Positions 4,111-52,374 of a stretch of 64,000 nt of DNA are shown piece after piece (position 1 is the stretch's first letter; every line of letters starts with the position of its first letter). The translations under genes were made by a program, and so were the position numbers. The notes beneath the pieces are model-generated. The model saw nothing but the letters and a program-made list of their open reading frames with translations, ran no database searches and was not told where the DNA came from. Where the stretch lies: the IMG/VR virus record IMGVR_UViG_3300034358_000008, positions 1 through 64,000 of that record; one strand, 5' to 3'.

Positions 4111-4590
4111 GGGGGTTACAATGGGTGAGCCCCAAATAAACTTTGATCTAGAGCGAATGAAAACTTCGATTGAATCAGGAACTATTTCCTTACCTCGAGG
4201 CATGACACATCAGCAGCGCCGACAGTTCGTTCGTGACCACTTAAAGGACAACCTACCCAAAGGCCCGTCCCCTGAAGAAATCGTAAGAGGGTTAGTACAT
4301 GGCTAAGGCAGTACGACATAAAAGTGGTGTGTGGATGCAGGAGGGTACGACTGGTTGGGAAAAGCATCATCACCCACCAGTCCAGATGAAAGTACCGAAT
4401 GCTCCACAATCTCTCGACCAGTATATGGACGAACTTGATAAGAAGTGGCGTAAAGCTGAAGGGCGACTTCCCGTTAAGGATCTTGACGAACGTGGGTTAA
4501 TGCTTGAAGGTAGAATCCCATGGGACCCAGTGCGACTAAAAGAACTCACCACTCAATTGTATGAAACTCCCAACTAAAAAGGTATTGACT

Positions 4591-36313: not shown

Positions 36314-37198
36314 CTATTTGAGGAAAGTCCCACAGGAAGCCTGTACATCTGTACCGACACGCGGGATTAGTTTGACACGGCCTTCAGGCAAGCGTCGTTT
36401 GATATAGCGGTAAAGGTAATCGATCTGACCGAATACAGGTTCACGTGACAGGTGTCCCTCTGGTGGATTGTAGCGAACGATATTCCAGTTAACGTCTAGT
36501 TGATAACCATCGATCTCATCTAGAATACACTTGACGTCATGGAGTGTGTCATTCTCGTGTTCAATGAAAGCGTAATGGATCTTTGGAACTTTACCGGTGT
36601 GGAGCTGCCATTCTTTAAGTGCACTAAACGCATTACGTGGGTATTGGGCTTTAGGTAACCAACGCCGACGGAATCGTTCGTTAAGCGAATATACAGAGTA
36701 GTACAACTCAGGGTAAACCGTTGGATCTTGGAATACGTTTACTAGACCCCTGTTACCGAACTCCTCAGGGAAGATAGTCGAGATCAGGAATTTAGCTTCC
36801 AATCCGTATGCAGCTGCACGTTCTTTCAACCCACGCAGAATCAAGTCAGCATTAGCTAAGAAGATCCTGTTGGCCAATGGTTCGCCACGCGCCATGAAAT
36901 TAAAGTGAACACGTTCAGCCGGATGTTTGGTAGCATAGTATGCCAATACTTCGTCCGCCTGCTGGAAATATTCCTCCACAGTGACGTCACGCAGATCAGT
37001 CTGTCCAGTGGCCGTCAACCAGCACATCCTACAAGCTTGCTTACAGCCCGTCTGAGAGCTTAAGTAAACAATGAAGTACTCGTCTGTCCTTCTTACATAA
37101 CGTGCCTCCAATCGTCCCCTGTGATCTTCAAAGACATGTTCGAAGTTAACGGATTGGTCTAATTGCGAATGGTGTTCTTTAAAGATCAGCTGGGTCAT
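36314..37198 (-). CDS. RlmN/Cfr-like radical SAM protein lacking the N-terminal domain
   Basis: SSQTGCKQACRMC (CxxxCxxC), FMARGEPLAN (cf. MGMGEP), ENDT, RYNP and C-terminal ASCG (cf. AACG). Confidence 0.85.
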   Translation of the reverse strand: MTQLIFKEHHSQLDQSVNFEHVFEDHRGRLEARYVRRTDEYFIVYLSSQTGCKQACRMCWLTATGQTDLRDVTVEEYFQQADEVLAYYATKHPAERVHFNFMARGEPLANRIFLANADLILRGLKERAAAYGLEAKFLISTIFPEEFGNRGLVNVFQDPTVYPELYYSVYSLNERFRRRWLPKAQYPRNAFSALKEWQLHTGKVPKIHYAFIEHENDTLHDVKCILDEIDGYQLDVNWNIVRYNPPEGHLSREPVFGQIDYLYRYIKRRLPEGRVKLIPRVGTDVQASCGTFLK

Positions 37199-37961: not shown

Positions 37962-38486
37962 ATGTCTAAAAGTAATTCGAAAGTAAACTGTGTGTTCTAT
38001 GGTTTCATCGGTGTGTTGTTAGCATTTGCTGCTGTCTGTCTCGTTATGGCTATTGCTGGCGTTCTAACTCGCCCAGTGTATGCCTCTGAAATGAAAACTG
38101 AACAGTATGAGGTGCTCTATAAGCTTCCCAAAGAGGAAGTCAAGATCACCAAAGAAGTATGTGACACTGTGACTCAATCGGCTGCCTGGATTAAAGGCAT
38201 GATCAATAAAGGTTACGATGATGATGCGATTAGTGAGAAACTGTCTGAAGCAGCTCTGGCTAATCTGGGTGATCGTAACGGTTGGATTGCCTACTACATG
38301 CTGGTTGATCCAAAGGCTTTGGCTAACATGCGTGAATGGCCTACAGAAGCCTCTTACCAGTGGATGCAACAGAAGTACCCTACCATGAATGGTGGTGAGT
38401 ACTATCAGGTATACGCCGGTGGTAAATGCGATCAATTGATCGGTAAGATTGTGAAGGTGCATCAGGTAAAGAAGCTTGATGATTAA
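37962..38486 (+). CDS. Putative exported or membrane-anchored protein
   Basis: N-terminal hydrophobic segment; two Cys in the mature region. Confidence 0.65.
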   Translation: MSKSNSKVNCVFYGFIGVLLAFAAVCLVMAIAGVLTRPVYASEMKTEQYEVLYKLPKEEVKITKEVCDTVTQSAAWIKGMINKGYDDDAISEKLSEAALANLGDRNGWIAYYMLVDPKALANMREWPTEASYQWMQQKYPTMNGGEYYQVYAGGKCDQLIGKIVKVHQVKKLDD

Positions 38487-38538: not shown

Positions 38539-38934
38539 TTAGCTCAGCGAGCCAATCAATTTATCCCCTAGGAATAACTGTAACATGTAACCGTTCCAAG
38601 TCCTGACAGATGGTTTCCAGTATGATCGGTGATTAGAACCACCCATTGCGTCACTTGCACTATGTACTCGCCATTTACCCATCAATGTGTCTTCAAGCAT
38701 TACCCGCATTTGTTCACGGGTACGCGTGCAATCTCCCAGAAGGTTTTCACGAGTATATACTTCGGCTTCCATTAGGTACAGGTTAATGAGATCTTGCGGT
38801 GGTTGCATAACCTGGTCAGCTATGGATAGACTCCGAGCCGTTACCTTTTGCACATTCTTCAGTGCGCTCTCAGCAGCTTTACGTTCACCGTGCATACGAG
38901 CAATGTTGTTCTTAAGTGTTTCTAGTTTACGCAT
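38539..38934 (-). CDS. Hypothetical coiled-coil protein (true start probably 38934)
   Basis: GAGGA SD before MRKLETLK; the longer listed ORF runs through a terminator. Confidence 0.65.
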   Translation of the reverse strand: MRKLETLKNNIARMHGERKAAESALKNVQKVTARSLSIADQVMQPPQDLINLYLMEAEVYTRENLLGDCTRTREQMRVMLEDTLMGKWRVHSASDAMGGSNHRSYWKPSVRTWNGYMLQLFLGDKLIGSLS

Positions 38935-38960
38935 TGTATTTTCCTCTAAGACGGAATAGA

Positions 38961-39246
38961 ACCCTACCCGAAGGTAGGGTCTAAGGACGAGTTTACTGTT
39001 TCGCTTCAGCCCATGATACCTTGGGGAAGGGTGCTCTAATATCATCGAGTAGATGGACCTAGTGCCTGAGTCGTCAGGTGTTCAGTCTATTCGGGGTACG
39101 GGCCTTCGACTTTCCTGATACTCTCTTATTCCGACTTGTCAGAGAGCGTCACGGGACATTATTTAATCTCAACTACCTACAGTCTGTGGCCCTAGTCTGA
39201 GGGGATTGGGGGCAAGTAGTTGGAAGAGCAGGACTGTTAGTCTTAC
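38961..39246 (-). ncRNA. Candidate structured ncRNA (about 270-285 nt including the terminator)
   Basis: Starts at the ATAGTATGTA motif, has several stems, and ends at a cUUCGg terminator (38961-38980). Confidence 0.65.
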
Positions 39247-39249
39247 ATA

Positions 39250-41160
39250 CTATCGTGACCAGAGTATTTCTTTCCACTCGTCCGGTAGTTTGTTCATCAG
39301 GTCCTCTACAGTTTGACTCTGGATAAACTGTTTCTGGAGTTGATGATACCTCCAACCCTGAACGGTTTCATATCGAATATCATCGGCGTTATTAGAAGCG
39401 ATATAACCCTTGATCACGTGTAAATCATCACGTGTTTCTTTGTCCCATATCGGTACTATAATTACCGTACCCTTGTACTCTTGATAGAAAGCTAGATCTT
39501 TCAGCAAGTAAACTTTCACCTTACAGTCCGTGTGATAATCTACTACCGAATTGTAGTGCTTAATGAGTTCCAATGCCGCGGGGAACAGCATAGCTAATTC
39601 CTTGGACTGCCTTTGTTCAAGTTCCCATTGCATTACAGTTGTAACAGTTTCGTCAGACAACTCAAGTTTGACTGGGTACGATTGACCACATGAGCAATAA
39701 GTGTAAATAAGCTTATTACCTGTTACCCAGATATCGCCCGATTGTTGGGCATGTAACTGGAGACTACCGTCCGCATCTTCAACGAAGTATTCCTTTTCGG
39801 GATTAAATGCAATTACAGGTGACGCTGGATTAGCGTGGATATAACGTGAAAGAATGCTTTGATCTAATACCATGATGTTTGCCTATGTGAAGTTGTCGTA
39901 GTGTGTCTCACCCGACTTCATTAGATTATCAATGTGAGTACTATTTATCCAAAGACCGCTCTAGCAGCCGCTTCGCTTGATTGCAGTTCACCGCAGTAGT
40001 TACTATACCTGCCAGTAGCAGGATCAAAGCGGAGTTGATCTGTTTTCTTAGGACCGATTGTGATTACCAGTTTCTCGCAGGCTTCGCGGAAACTGAGTGC
40101 TGTTTCTCGACCTATTAGACTAGGTGGTTCATGGTTACCATTATCACGCCAACCAACGGACCAGATCTCAAACTCCCGTGGACGAAGGATATGGTCACGG
40201 CACTCTTTAAGGACGGACATGATCTGATCAAAGTCTTCATAGCCTAAAGCTGTAGCATCACGAACAAATGCACGTTGTGAATGGCCATCAGTCACTAGTT
40301 CGTCCAGAGCTTCTGACTTCTCAATCAAGACGCCTTTGTTATAAAGGATAGCGAGGTCGTTCCACTTCATCCATTCACCCTGTGGGTCCTCTGTGAGCTT
40401 CCCAGTGGGTGGTGGAGCATGTCGGTCAACGATGATACCGATTGGTTTAGATGTATAACGTTTAATAAGAGTTAGGGCTGACATTAGTCTACCTGTATGC
40501 TGATGTAGATCTTGGTTGATCCGGCGTAGATGATATCGTCATTGGTGTACTGTCCAGCCGATACTGGTTTAGATCCAATCACTACGTGATAGTTATCATT
40601 CTTGAAGTTCTTTATAAATCGACAAACCTTGTGTCGTATGTATACGCGACATTTAGTCGATAGCCTAGGGAATTCCTTAGCTATGATCCGATCCATTGTA
40701 CGGTGGTAATCTTGCATGGTCACCTCACAACGTGCACCGCTTGGCTAAAATTTCAGGGGTCATCTTTTGAGCTTCATGTTCGCGAGCGGCACGTTCATTG
40801 AATAGTCGACTACGTTCAGCATGTTGGGCTAAACGTTCTTCTCGGGTAGGGGCAATACGTTGAAGGATCTTTTCCAATAGGTTTTCTGAAAGCATGGTAA
40901 CCTCAATGGCACATGTTAGAACCGACTGTATGGCATTCGCACATACAGATCTTTCTTTTGGCTGTACCGACTTCAACATGATGGTAGATAGGGTATCGTT
41001 GTTCCCGACTATAGATCCACTTACCTAGTTCAGAAGTAGTATCTTCTACAGCAACCAACTTAGCGGACTCGCCATAGTTCTGCTGAAGAAATGTTTCCTT
41101 TACCGTACCATCAGTATTGATGTATTTCTGGTAAGTGTTATCACAGCATGGCTGGCACAT
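39250..41160 (-). other. Minus-strand hypothetical CDS (39250-39873, 39945-40484, 40484-40723, 40725-40895, 40903-41160)
   Basis: Coupled ORFs with GAGG SD motifs. Confidence 0.65.
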
Positions 41161-41641: not shown

Positions 41642-41651
41642 TACATACTAT
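41642..41651 (-). promoter_or_regulatory. ATAGTATGTA late-type (TATG) promoter motif
   Basis: Lies 11 nt upstream of tRNA-Trp; same 10-mer at 39244, 42878 and 51187. Confidence 0.65.
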
Positions 41652-41959
41652 TACTTAGCGAGTAAACTTTTCACGTAAGCTTCCCATTCAAACACTGTAA
41701 AGATAGTCCTGAGTAGGTCACACGTTGATACACCATTTACATAGTTGATATGTAAAGTCTTTAACGAGTGAGCTGGTGTGATGTATGTTAAATTGGAATC
41801 GTATATATCATGCTTCACCAACAACCCATTGCATACATTACCTCCTTCGCTACAGAGGTATGTGATATGATGCCGTCTCTCAACGCCGGTCTCTTCGCAA
41901 TCTGCAACTGCATGATTTGATATTGTAATCATGTCTCTTTTACAACATGGACACTTCAT
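41651..41959 (-). CDS. Small Cys-rich putative zinc-binding protein
   Basis: MKCPCCK...C...C....C pattern. Confidence 0.6.
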   Translation of the reverse strand: MKCPCCKRDMITISNHAVADCEETGVERRHHITYLCSEGGNVCNGLLVKHDIYDSNLTYITPAHSLKTLHINYVNGVSTCDLLRTIFTVFEWEAYVKSLLAK

Positions 41960-42877: not shown

Positions 42878-42887
42878 TACATACTAT
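42878..42887 (-). promoter_or_regulatory. ATAGTATGTA late-type promoter motif of the tRNA-Tyr operon
   Basis: Same 10-mer; about 78-nt leader to tRNA-Tyr. Confidence 0.65.
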
Positions 42888-42920
42888 TGCAACAATTGTA
42901 TTCTTTTACAACGACTTACA

Positions 42921-51058: not shown

Positions 51059-51085
51059 TTTGTACGCCTTTTTAGTTAAAAGCAA

Positions 51086-51189
51086 AATAAAGTCCTCCCC
51101 GAAGGGAGGAGCTTTACCAACCCACAAACCAACACTAAAGGAGAACCATCATGCAATCCACAATGGAGTAACGTTATCGCTTCCGTTAC
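51086..51189 (-). ncRNA. Candidate ~105-nt sRNA with an anti-SD segment
   Basis: ATAGTATGTA motif at 51187-51196, 5' hairpin, UUCUCCUUUA, and a cUUCGg terminator with U-tract. Confidence 0.6.
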
Positions 51190-51210
51190 ATACTATTACA
51201 ACAAAGTATG

Positions 51211-52374
51211 TTAATCTAGGAAGTCGACTTCGAATTCTGCTTGTTCATTGGAGGTGTCCAAAGCGTTAACCATGTACTGGTTGTTATCCACTTCTTGAGG
51301 ACTGGTTTGGTTTGCAGCAAGATCGAGATATTCGGTCATGTAAGGGAGTGGGTTCTTCTCAGGCCATTCCAGTTCAAAACCAGTAACTTCCAAGAACTCA
51401 GCGTAGTGAGCTTCAGTCAGTTGACCTTTATGGCCAGTGAAGATACCAGCAGCATTACCATTGAACAGGACCCATTGGATCATCTTCTTCAGTGTCACAC
51501 CCGGCAGTTCACGACCTTCAGAGAACAGGTACATCAACCAACGAACTTCCGACATCAGAACTTCCCAATACAACTTGGTGCATTCTTCTTTGGTTTGTTC
51601 GTATGCAAGACGTCCACGTTCCGTTTTAAGCAGGGCTTTGATTACTTCCTGACCGAACTGTGCATGGATCTCGAACTCGTCGATAGCGATCTTCTGGACA
51701 CCCATAACGATAGGTTGGAAGCGACCCATCTTACCGAAGGCGAAGGTCACAGCAAACGAAGCCATGAACTGAACACGTTCTAGGTAGTACAGAGCCATGA
51801 AGAACTTGAAGATCTTGTTGTACAAGTCTTGATCGTTCGGGATAGTACCACAAGCGTAAGCATGGGAAGCATCATGTGCCTCACCCATTACTTTAGCTAC
51901 TGTCACCAGACGCTCTTGGGCTTCTTGTACTTTCAGAATCTCATCCAGAATAACCTGTGGATTCTTAAACGAGTTACGCACGATCTCTGAGTAGGTCAGA
52001 GCGTGCAGGTTCTCGTTGGAGTTGATCAGTACGTAGCCTGCCCACACACGGGAGTCAGTCATTACTGGACCAAGGATGTTTACGATAGCACGGGATGCAG
52101 TAGCGTCAGCTTCCCATTGCCATGCCAGAGTCTTGATCATCATCTCGTAAGAAGTACGGTCACACGTTTCAAACTCGTGGAGACAGTCAGCATACGGGAA
52201 TTCATTCTCATCCCAATCCATCATCTTCAAACGTTTGTACAGGTTGAAGAGGATCGGGTGATGGTTGTTGATAGAATCGAACAGGCCCGGCTCCTGACCC
52301 AGAATGATCTCGTTGGAATCGTAGTCGGACTTGTTAGCGTTAAAGATTTTAATCGGGAGATCTACGTTGGACAT
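51211..52374 (-). CDS. nrdB: Ribonucleotide reductase class Ia beta subunit
   Basis: Diiron and radical residues: EAD, ENLHALTY, LERVQF and DEFEIH. Confidence 0.93.
   Translation of the reverse strand: MSNVDLPIKIFNANKSDYDSNEIILGQEPGLFDSINNHHPILFNLYKRLKMMDWDENEFPYADCLHEFETCDRTSYEMMIKTLAWQWEADATASRAIVNILGPVMTDSRVWAGYVLINSNENLHALTYSEIVRNSFKNPQVILDEILKVQEAQERLVTVAKVMGEAHDASHAYACGTIPNDQDLYNKIFKFFMALYYLERVQFMASFAVTFAFGKMGRFQPIVMGVQKIAIDEFEIHAQFGQEVIKALLKTERGRLAYEQTKEECTKLYWEVLMSEVRWLMYLFSEGRELPGVTLKKMIQWVLFNGNAAGIFTGHKGQLTEAHYAEFLEVTGFELEWPEKNPLPYMTEYLDLAANQTSPQEVDNNQYMVNALDTSNEQAEFEVDFLD

Follow-up and report, generated by a model that had tools for sequence, protein, structure and literature searches.

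Large structured RNAs encoded beside phage tRNA genes are a long-standing puzzle, as no function has been assigned to them. Among these are GOLLD and ROOL, large ornate RNAs of phages and prophages often located next to tRNA islands, which combine a conserved core with variable accessory parts and whose covariation-predicted "tertiary" kissing loops proved to be contacts between molecules in RNA-only cages (PMC12286853). The tRNA operon of the lytic phage T4 encodes small stable non-tRNA RNAs of about 120-140 nt (species 1 and 2, also called bands C and D), which are co-expressed with the tRNAs and the function of which is still unknown. In Pseudomonas phage 201phi2-1, an ONT-cappable-seq study reported an sRNA immediately upstream of the tRNA and assigned the tRNA-Leu promoter to the middle class (PMC11512511). 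According to the same study, 201phi2-1 makes eight sRNAs by premature termination in 5'UTRs, one of them just upstream of its tRNA, and antitermination is suspected there.

Here we analyzed a non-coding element in a 64,000-nucleotide stretch (the window), which comprises the first 64 kb of a 324,912-bp jumbo phage record assembled from a peat metagenome (IMGVR_UViG_3300034358_000008). Like GOLLD and ROOL, the element is phage-encoded and lies beside tRNA genes, being 2.3 kb from the three tRNA genes of the phage, on the same strand and with the same promoter motif as two of them. It is highly structured, with a loop-loop contact supported by covariation. At the same time, no sequence or structure similarity to GOLLD or ROOL was detected, as the Rfam models of these families did not match at any threshold tried, and the hosts are Pseudomonas jumbo phages of the 201phi2-1/Psa21 group rather than Firmicutes, Actinobacteria or rumen phages. 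As to size, the form in the window is only about 290 nt, while the forms in Psa21, D6 and several other relatives reach 0.7-0.9 kb, so that a length criterion of over 500 nt with ornate multi-domain structure gives no single answer for the family; oligomerization was not measured. The resemblance is an analogy, not membership. In 201phi2-1 the homologous locus occupies the same position, between the same upstream gene and tRNA-Leu(UAA), with a homologous promoter region, and its last hairpin plus terminator hairpin is homologous to the 3' end of the element; however, 201phi2-1 keeps only about 100 nt and lacks the M0-M5 fold (see below), and the window has no tRNA-Leu. Identity of this remnant with the published sRNA is inferred from the description of the latter (one tRNA, with the sRNA just upstream). 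The T4 RNAs come from an unrelated phage family; their sequences were not compared with the element, and no homology is claimed.

Boundaries and non-coding character of the element

The preliminary description placed on the minus strand a structured RNA of about 270 nt with its own promoter and terminator, without a credible ORF, and regarded it as a standalone late ncRNA gene. The observation itself was confirmed, its coordinates and anatomy included (Table 1). The stop codon of the upstream gene lies inside the promoter-like motif, and the downstream gene starts behind its own GAGG, eight bases upstream of the ATG. The bipartite motif (A)ATAC-N9-10-(A)TAGTATGTA occurs only a handful of times in the 325-kb genome: upstream of the element, of tRNA-Trp, of tRNA-Tyr, of a second short non-coding unit at about 51200, and at 104072. 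The 3' hairpin belongs to a class of about 40 near-identical UUCG-loop terminator hairpins scattered at gene ends in this genome; it was missed by a generic terminator scan, because its tail has only 4 T in 8 bases. These data are motif-level evidence only. Both motifs that bound the element recur elsewhere in the genome in the expected places. No transcript of this phage has been observed: two contigs from metagenomic RNA libraries (162 and 174 nt) lie wholly inside the element, but these libraries may contain DNA, and together with the sRNA reported at the homologous locus of 201phi2-1 they leave the existence of a discrete transcript undecided.

Table 1. Coordinates (window positions) of the element, its parts and the surrounding features
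Position	Strand	Feature	Supporting observations
39246 to about 38955	-	Whole element, about 290 nt	
39250-39873	-	Upstream gene; stop codon TAG at 39252-39250	
39244-39269	-	Promoter-like motif AAATAC-N10-GATAGTATGTA (GATAGTATGTA at 39254-39244); predicted start at or near G39246	Conserved in L007 and Viktualia; a variant at the same place in 201phi2-1
39232-39242	-	M0: 5' hairpin GACU-AAC-AGUC	Hairpin at this position in every homologue, but with unrelated sequence, e.g., GUGUA-GAAA-UACAC in Viktualia and CCCUCGC...GCGUGGG in L030
39170-39222	-	M1: long stem (39222-39212 with 39180-39170) enclosing a C-rich internal loop and the hairpin CCCU-CAGACU-AGGG (39203-39190)	Helix 1: 11 pairs, 9 with changes on both sides; inner hairpin nearly invariant
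39114-39155	-	M2: hairpin, stem 39147-39141/39126-39120, 14-nt loop; loop bases AGUCG (39136-39132) form the 5' half of the kissing loop, followed by the conserved GAAUA	Helix 3: 12 pairs, 8 with changes on both sides
39009-39103	-	M3: multi-branch domain closed by GCCC (39103-39100) with GGGC (39012-39009); contains M4, a short helix GAC/GUC (39087-39085 with 39058-39056) and the hairpin CCUU-CCCC-AAGG (39030-39019), the latter found only in the short-form clade	Helices 5-8; block 39040-39008 identical in the window, L007 and Viktualia
39065-39078	-	M4: hairpin CCUGA-CGAC-UCAGG; loop bases CGACU (39073-39069) form the 3' half of the kissing loop	All 5 kissing pairs covary; 3 of 5 stem pairs with double changes
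38987-39003	-	M6: 3' hairpin GCGA...UCGU, preceded by GGCUGAAG	Helix 9; the most widely conserved element; the only part retained in 201phi2-1, directly upstream of tRNA-Leu
38953-38981	-	Terminator: nine-pair GC-rich stem, UUCG loop (hairpin 38981-38960), tail CUAUUCC	Genome-wide class of UUCG hairpins with the tail UUUAU(G/U)(C/U)CGU, four copies near-identical in one comparison; a different but compensated hairpin at the same place in Viktualia and 201phi2-1
38946-38943		Ribosome-binding site (GAGG) of the downstream gene	
38539-38934	-	Downstream gene, 131 aa, start ATG 38934; not part of the RNA	No homologue at this position in Viktualia
38539-39045		168-aa extension of the downstream gene, from ATG 39045	ATG absent and out of frame in L007
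36314-37198		RlmN-like radical-SAM gene, 1.8 kb downstream of the element	
41664-41644		Same bipartite motif, directly upstream of tRNA-Trp	
42900-42880		Same bipartite motif, directly upstream of tRNA-Tyr	
51085-51208		Second promoter-terminator-gene unit of the same layout; bipartite motif at 51208	
104072		Bipartite motif (record position)	

A blastn search of the region against GenBank phages returned a single hit, Pseudomonas phage Viktualia (322 kb), which covers only the non-coding element (39217-38995) at 75% identity. By contrast, the protein encoded just upstream is only 34% identical between the two phages, and the downstream genes are unrelated. A DNA contig of another relative (sequencing run X6) matches up to 39254 and then diverges completely. 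The element is therefore a conserved module, the 5' edge of which coincides with the promoter-like motif.

Translation as the extended ORF had been named in advance as an outcome that would overturn the proposal, and the comparison of homologues spoke against it. No frame is open in all of them, and substitutions are spread evenly over the three codon phases (8/7/7 against L007, the closest relative; 28/27/31 against Viktualia). Indels are of 1, 2, 5 and 17 bases, and the ATG of the extended ORF is missing in L007. (Numbers preceded by L denote related loci and genomes retrieved in this work.)

Homologues and covariation

Thirty-four related loci were fetched using the RlmN-like radical-SAM gene, and searches with nhmmer and then with a covariance model (240 positions, 45 pairs) found the element in thirteen distinct phages or contigs, all relatives of 201phi2-1 and Psa21. 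Every copy is 1-3 kb upstream of that gene and on the strand of the tRNA genes. The named isolates are Viktualia, Psa21 (L025), D6 and RVTF4; 201phi2-1 (L028) gives only a 21-bit match, and phiKZ-like and phiPA3-like genomes give none. In pattern searches, the exact pattern TCGGAATA...TAGRCTGAAC and the 16-mer CCCCAAGGTATCATGG gave only chance hits apart from L007, the 15-mer of the 3' block gave more than 119 hits, nearly all of them coding-sequence coincidences with three real ones (L172, L083 and L122), the M6 pattern gave 70 hits with one new homologue (L219), and a metagenome scan added only two contigs; genome contigs were not scanned. The conserved block is present in many plant, leaf and rhizosphere metagenomes according to the Logan index.

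Folding of the single sequence is only marginal (z = -1.95), and it is the comparative evidence that puts the structure beyond chance. RNAalifold and the model alignment gave six helical elements, M0 to M6 (Table 1), to which we added a loop-loop contact noticed by eye between the 14-nt loop of M2 and the 4-6-nt loop of M4. Covariation, proposed at the outset as a test of the RNA, was evaluated on ten sequences: 92.1% of cells form standard pairs, against 27-44% when the 3' partners are slid by 1-3 columns, 29 of 50 pairs carry changes on both sides, and no shuffle out of 500 reached the observed covariation score. The kissing loop exists in four different complementary versions: AGUCG/CGACU (window, L007), CAUCG/CGAUG (Viktualia), GACUA/UAGUC (L027 and others) and GAUCA/UGAUC (L030, L122, RVTF4). 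Several of the sequences are close relatives, so the counts of compensatory cells overstate the number of independent events, the number of pairs with double changes and the slid controls being the more robust figures. Frequent G-U pairs fix the strand as minus, and compensated changes also separate the window from Viktualia, so the fold is maintained within the short-form clade.

Of the stems put forward in the preliminary description, GACT/AGTC, CAACTAC/GTAGTTG, CCCT/AGGG and CCTGA/TCAGG are supported by covariation, as is the outer part of CTCT.../...AGAG, whereas ACAG/CTGT is not conserved. The inner CTGAC/GTCGG is not a stem: its GUCG takes part in the covarying kissing loop with the loop of the CCTGA/TCAGG hairpin.

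Comparison with Rfam had likewise been suggested beforehand, and Rfam 15 was searched at gathering thresholds with the window and at E up to 10 with the element and five large relatives. Only tRNAs and chance-level hits came back; in particular, no RNase P, tmRNA, group I/II intron, small ribozyme, 6S, SRP or riboswitch aptamer model matched the element. The only non-trivial hit was a 16-bit match (E 0.43) to a group II intron D1-D4 model, on an accessory domain of the large form in L027 that the window lacks. ARAGORN found no tmRNA. Resemblances considered by eye, namely to RNase P (the P4 and CR-I-like GGAAAGUC), group I introns (the R/S-like CAGACUA and UAGUC), group II domain V, the hammerhead three-way junction, the cobalamin riboswitch, and 16S and 23S fragments, either did not survive the alignment of divergent homologues or had no model support; the GUCG first thought to form a P4-like helix turned out to be the kissing-loop partner. 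Literature searches found no description of this RNA.

The larger RNA of the tRNA islands

In Psa21, D6, L023, L027, L030, L033 and L177, conservation extends far beyond this domain, which there forms the middle part of a 0.7-0.9 kb RNA. About 140 nt lie upstream, while a variable accessory region and a 3' block of about 200 nt lie downstream, ending a few bases before tRNA-Leu(UAA). The 5' and 3' blocks are conserved and structured; the 3' block folds into a hairpin with an invariant CUCCAUC-containing loop plus a three-way junction, and shows some covariation. In several phages the whole RNA fills the space between two tRNA genes. The RNA lies just upstream of tRNA-Leu(UAA) in Viktualia, L172, L177 and D6, and in 201phi2-1 as a remnant; L172 is a divergent version with the same ends and a promoter-like motif upstream.

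Viktualia has only the middle domain, followed by a hairpin and tRNA-Leu, whereas the window and L007 have the middle domain, a terminator and an unrelated gene. The genome of the window has only three tRNAs and no tRNA-Leu, and a search of it for the 5' and 3' blocks of the large form found nothing. 201phi2-1 retains just M6 and the hairpin before tRNA-Leu, while L219 carries a 3' end almost identical to the 201phi2-1 remnant, yet still has the complete middle domain and the 5' block. The family therefore forms a reduction series, in which the window shows that the middle domain can stand alone and does not need tRNA-Leu in cis.

Possible role and alternative readings

Taken together, these results allow the element to be regarded as a genuine non-coding RNA gene, and the interpretation in the preliminary description is only partly supported. 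It was right in substance as to a structured, untranslated RNA bounded by a promoter-like motif and a terminator, but the label "late" is not supported, considering that the same motif precedes tRNA-Trp and tRNA-Tyr here and that the homologous promoter in 201phi2-1 was classed as middle (PMC11512511); it also missed that the element is one domain of a larger family, and nothing was found for or against self-cleavage. What our analysis demonstrates directly is the absence of coding, a conservation far above that of the protein neighbours, the conserved fold with its five-pair kissing contact, and, by comparison, the occurrence of this fold as the central domain of the larger RNA. It is from the motifs that we infer transcription, together with the tRNAs, by the phage's own non-virion RNA polymerase, with arrest at its standard terminator, and from context alone that we infer a function. 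With moderate confidence, we assume that the domain is an autonomous module acting in trans as a stable folded RNA, i.e., a scaffold, decoy or self-assembling particle connected with the tRNA and translation programme of the phage, as is suspected for GOLLD and ROOL, and not a message or a cis-acting leader. The covariation does not distinguish a kissing loop within one molecule from one between molecules, and no molecular partner was identified. The persistence of the domain in a genome devoid of tRNA-Leu and of both flanking blocks separates its function from the tRNA in cis. On the other hand, the family is small and confined to one clade of Pseudomonas jumbo phages, the second unit at 51085-51208 makes the layout itself generic in this genome, and 201phi2-1 does well with only the last hairpin, so the RNA is dispensable in at least one lineage.

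The main alternative, which we consider unlikely, is a cis-acting 5' leader, either riboswitch-like or a protein- or antitermination-controlled attenuator, in which the folded domain would decide whether the polymerase stops at the terminator hairpin or reads on into the 131-aa gene here, or into tRNA-Leu in relatives. In its favor, a promoter, a structured leader and a terminator are followed by a gene with no promoter of its own between the terminator and the start codon, which must therefore be read through from upstream; in addition, the 201phi2-1 sRNAs arise by premature termination (PMC11512511), M6 plus the terminator hairpin is the part retained in that phage, and the layout recurs in the second unit. 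However, what lies downstream is not conserved (an unrelated ORF here, tRNA-Leu in Viktualia, a further 400 nt of conserved RNA in the large forms), the terminator is a generic module, and we found no conserved alternative pairing of it with the domain, i.e., no antiterminator. In several relatives the RNA sits between tRNAs with no terminator after this domain.

It is still less likely that the element is a decaying remnant of the larger tRNA-Leu-associated RNA, no longer functional. The loss of the flanking blocks and tRNA-Leu, as well as the further reduction tolerated in 201phi2-1, would agree with this view, but the short form is shared by three diverged phages (window, L007, Viktualia), in which the RNA keeps 75% identity with compensated stem and kissing-loop changes and an invariant 33-nt block, while the neighbouring protein has drifted to 34% identity, and it has acquired or kept its own promoter and terminator. 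A catalytic or intron-derived RNA (a self-cleaving or self-processing ribozyme, a fragment of a group I or II intron, or an RNase P-like RNA serving the tRNA island) is improbable: the complex pseudoknotted fold with many invariant unpaired bases, the tRNA context and the weak group II hit in L027 are compatible with it, but no model supports it for the part present in the window, and no domain V-like hairpin or hammerhead core was found by inspection. Translation of a part of the element, as the 168-aa extension or a small peptide, is very improbable despite the open frame from ATG 39045 and the stretch reading ILEHPSPRYHGL identical in the three short forms, since this identity reflects an invariant nucleotide block that is deleted in all large forms, there is no codon periodicity, the frame is shifted in L007, and the downstream gene has its own ribosome-binding site placed after a terminator.

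A more far-reaching possibility, which we put forward only tentatively, is that the element is the minimal, naturally excised core of a previously undescribed class of large ornate RNAs specific to the tRNA islands of Pseudomonas jumbo phages of the 201phi2-1/Psa21 lineage, presumably nucleus-forming ones. In this view, the kissing loop would act between molecules, so the RNA would build RNA-only assemblies like GOLLD and ROOL, or would trap a host or phage factor of the tRNA and translation machinery. As a 250-nt domain is enough in three phages, it would then be an unusually tractable entry point into what such tRNA-island RNAs do.

While the niche beside phage tRNA genes is already known from GOLLD, ROOL and the T4 stable RNAs, the RNA analyzed here is new, being an unrelated third family in it. 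It is found in cultivable, well-studied jumbo phages of plant-associated Pseudomonas (Viktualia, Psa21, D6, RVTF4, and as a remnant in the model phage 201phi2-1). The natural deletion series, i.e., the full form of 0.7-0.9 kb with tRNA-Leu, the 290-nt stand-alone core without the tRNA and the 100-nt remnant, identifies which module is self-sufficient and provides small constructs for structure determination and genetics. In the GenBank records of Psa21, D6 and RVTF4, which were hit by the search with the large form, the region carries no annotated feature, while in Viktualia a part of it is mis-annotated as a 33-aa antisense "hypothetical protein".

Promoter motifs and terminators of the phage genome

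A second unit with the same layout as the structured RNA gene was found on the same strand of the window (see the table below). Its promoter motif overlaps the stop codon of the preceding gene and is followed by about 100 nt of non-coding sequence, a UUCG terminator, and then a ribosome-binding site with an ATG. The unit is a possible small RNA or attenuated leader. The genes of tRNA-Trp and tRNA-Tyr are each preceded by the same bipartite motif (TAC-N-TAGTATGTA) as the RNA, thus suggesting a dedicated promoter subclass for stable RNAs. About 40 GC-rich hairpins with a UUCG loop and the tail UUUAU(G/U)(C/U)CGU are present in the whole genome of the phage, and these evidently comprise its terminator class, like the conserved terminator motif reported for 201phi2-1 and phiKZ.

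Coordinates of the additional features in the window and in related loci (L numbers)
Sequence	Position	Strand	Feature
Window	51085-51208	minus	Second promoter-terminator unit (preceding gene 51211-52374; terminator centre 51103; ATG 51057)
Window	41644-41664	minus	Bipartite motif preceding a tRNA gene (tRNA-Trp)
Window	42880-42900	minus	Bipartite motif preceding a tRNA gene (tRNA-Tyr)
Window	14892, 35902, 38505, 41235, 42184, 44137, 55638		Examples of UUCG-loop hairpins
Window	36314-37198	minus	Radical-SAM protein
Window	37962-38486	plus	174-aa ORF
Window	39200-39211		C-rich internal loop of M1
L027	8973-8990		Invariant loop of the 3'-block hairpin (equivalent positions in other large forms)
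L027; also L023, L122, L177, L172	8757-8875 (L027)		Accessory domain of the large RNA
L177	9711-9787		tRNA-SeC (anticodon UCA)
L001 (Viktualia)	4156-4257		33-aa 'hypothetical protein'

Sequence elements of the short and large RNA forms

The C-rich internal loop of the long-stem element M1 in the short forms (CCCCCAAUCCCC) resembles the invariant loop CCCUCCAUC of the 3'-block hairpin in the large forms, a loop that contains the anti-Shine-Dalgarno-like CCUCC; this may be either a coincidence or a transplanted functional site. The accessory domain of the large RNA, found in L027 and four further related loci, carries GAAGGUGA(A/U)AGUCC and gave a weak Rfam hit to a group II intron D1-D4 model (16 bits, E 0.43), whereas the window lacks this domain. 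The 'hypothetical protein' annotated in the GenBank record of Viktualia lies antisense over the 3' part of the RNA and is almost certainly a spurious call.

In many plant, leaf and rhizosphere metagenomes (runs X8-X20), about 5% of the sampled 31-mers of the 801-base stretch were present. The part of the stretch from which these words come was not examined, but if they originate from the invariant block of the RNA, short-form relatives would be common on plants. In the tRNA island of a relative (locus L177), ARAGORN called a tRNA-SeC, a possible opal suppressor.

Neighbouring protein-coding genes

The ORF on the plus strand of the window, opposite to its neighbours, encodes a product with an N-terminal hydrophobic segment and a sub-threshold Pfam hit to the group II intron maturase domain (E 0.005), which is probably due to chance. 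The radical-SAM protein is distantly related to the RNA methyltransferases RlmN and Cfr (TIGR00048, E 1e-14, far below the cut-off) and lacks the N-terminal part of the profile. Its gene is conserved downstream of the tRNA/RNA island in all 34 related loci, so that the protein is a candidate modifier of the phage tRNAs or of this RNA.
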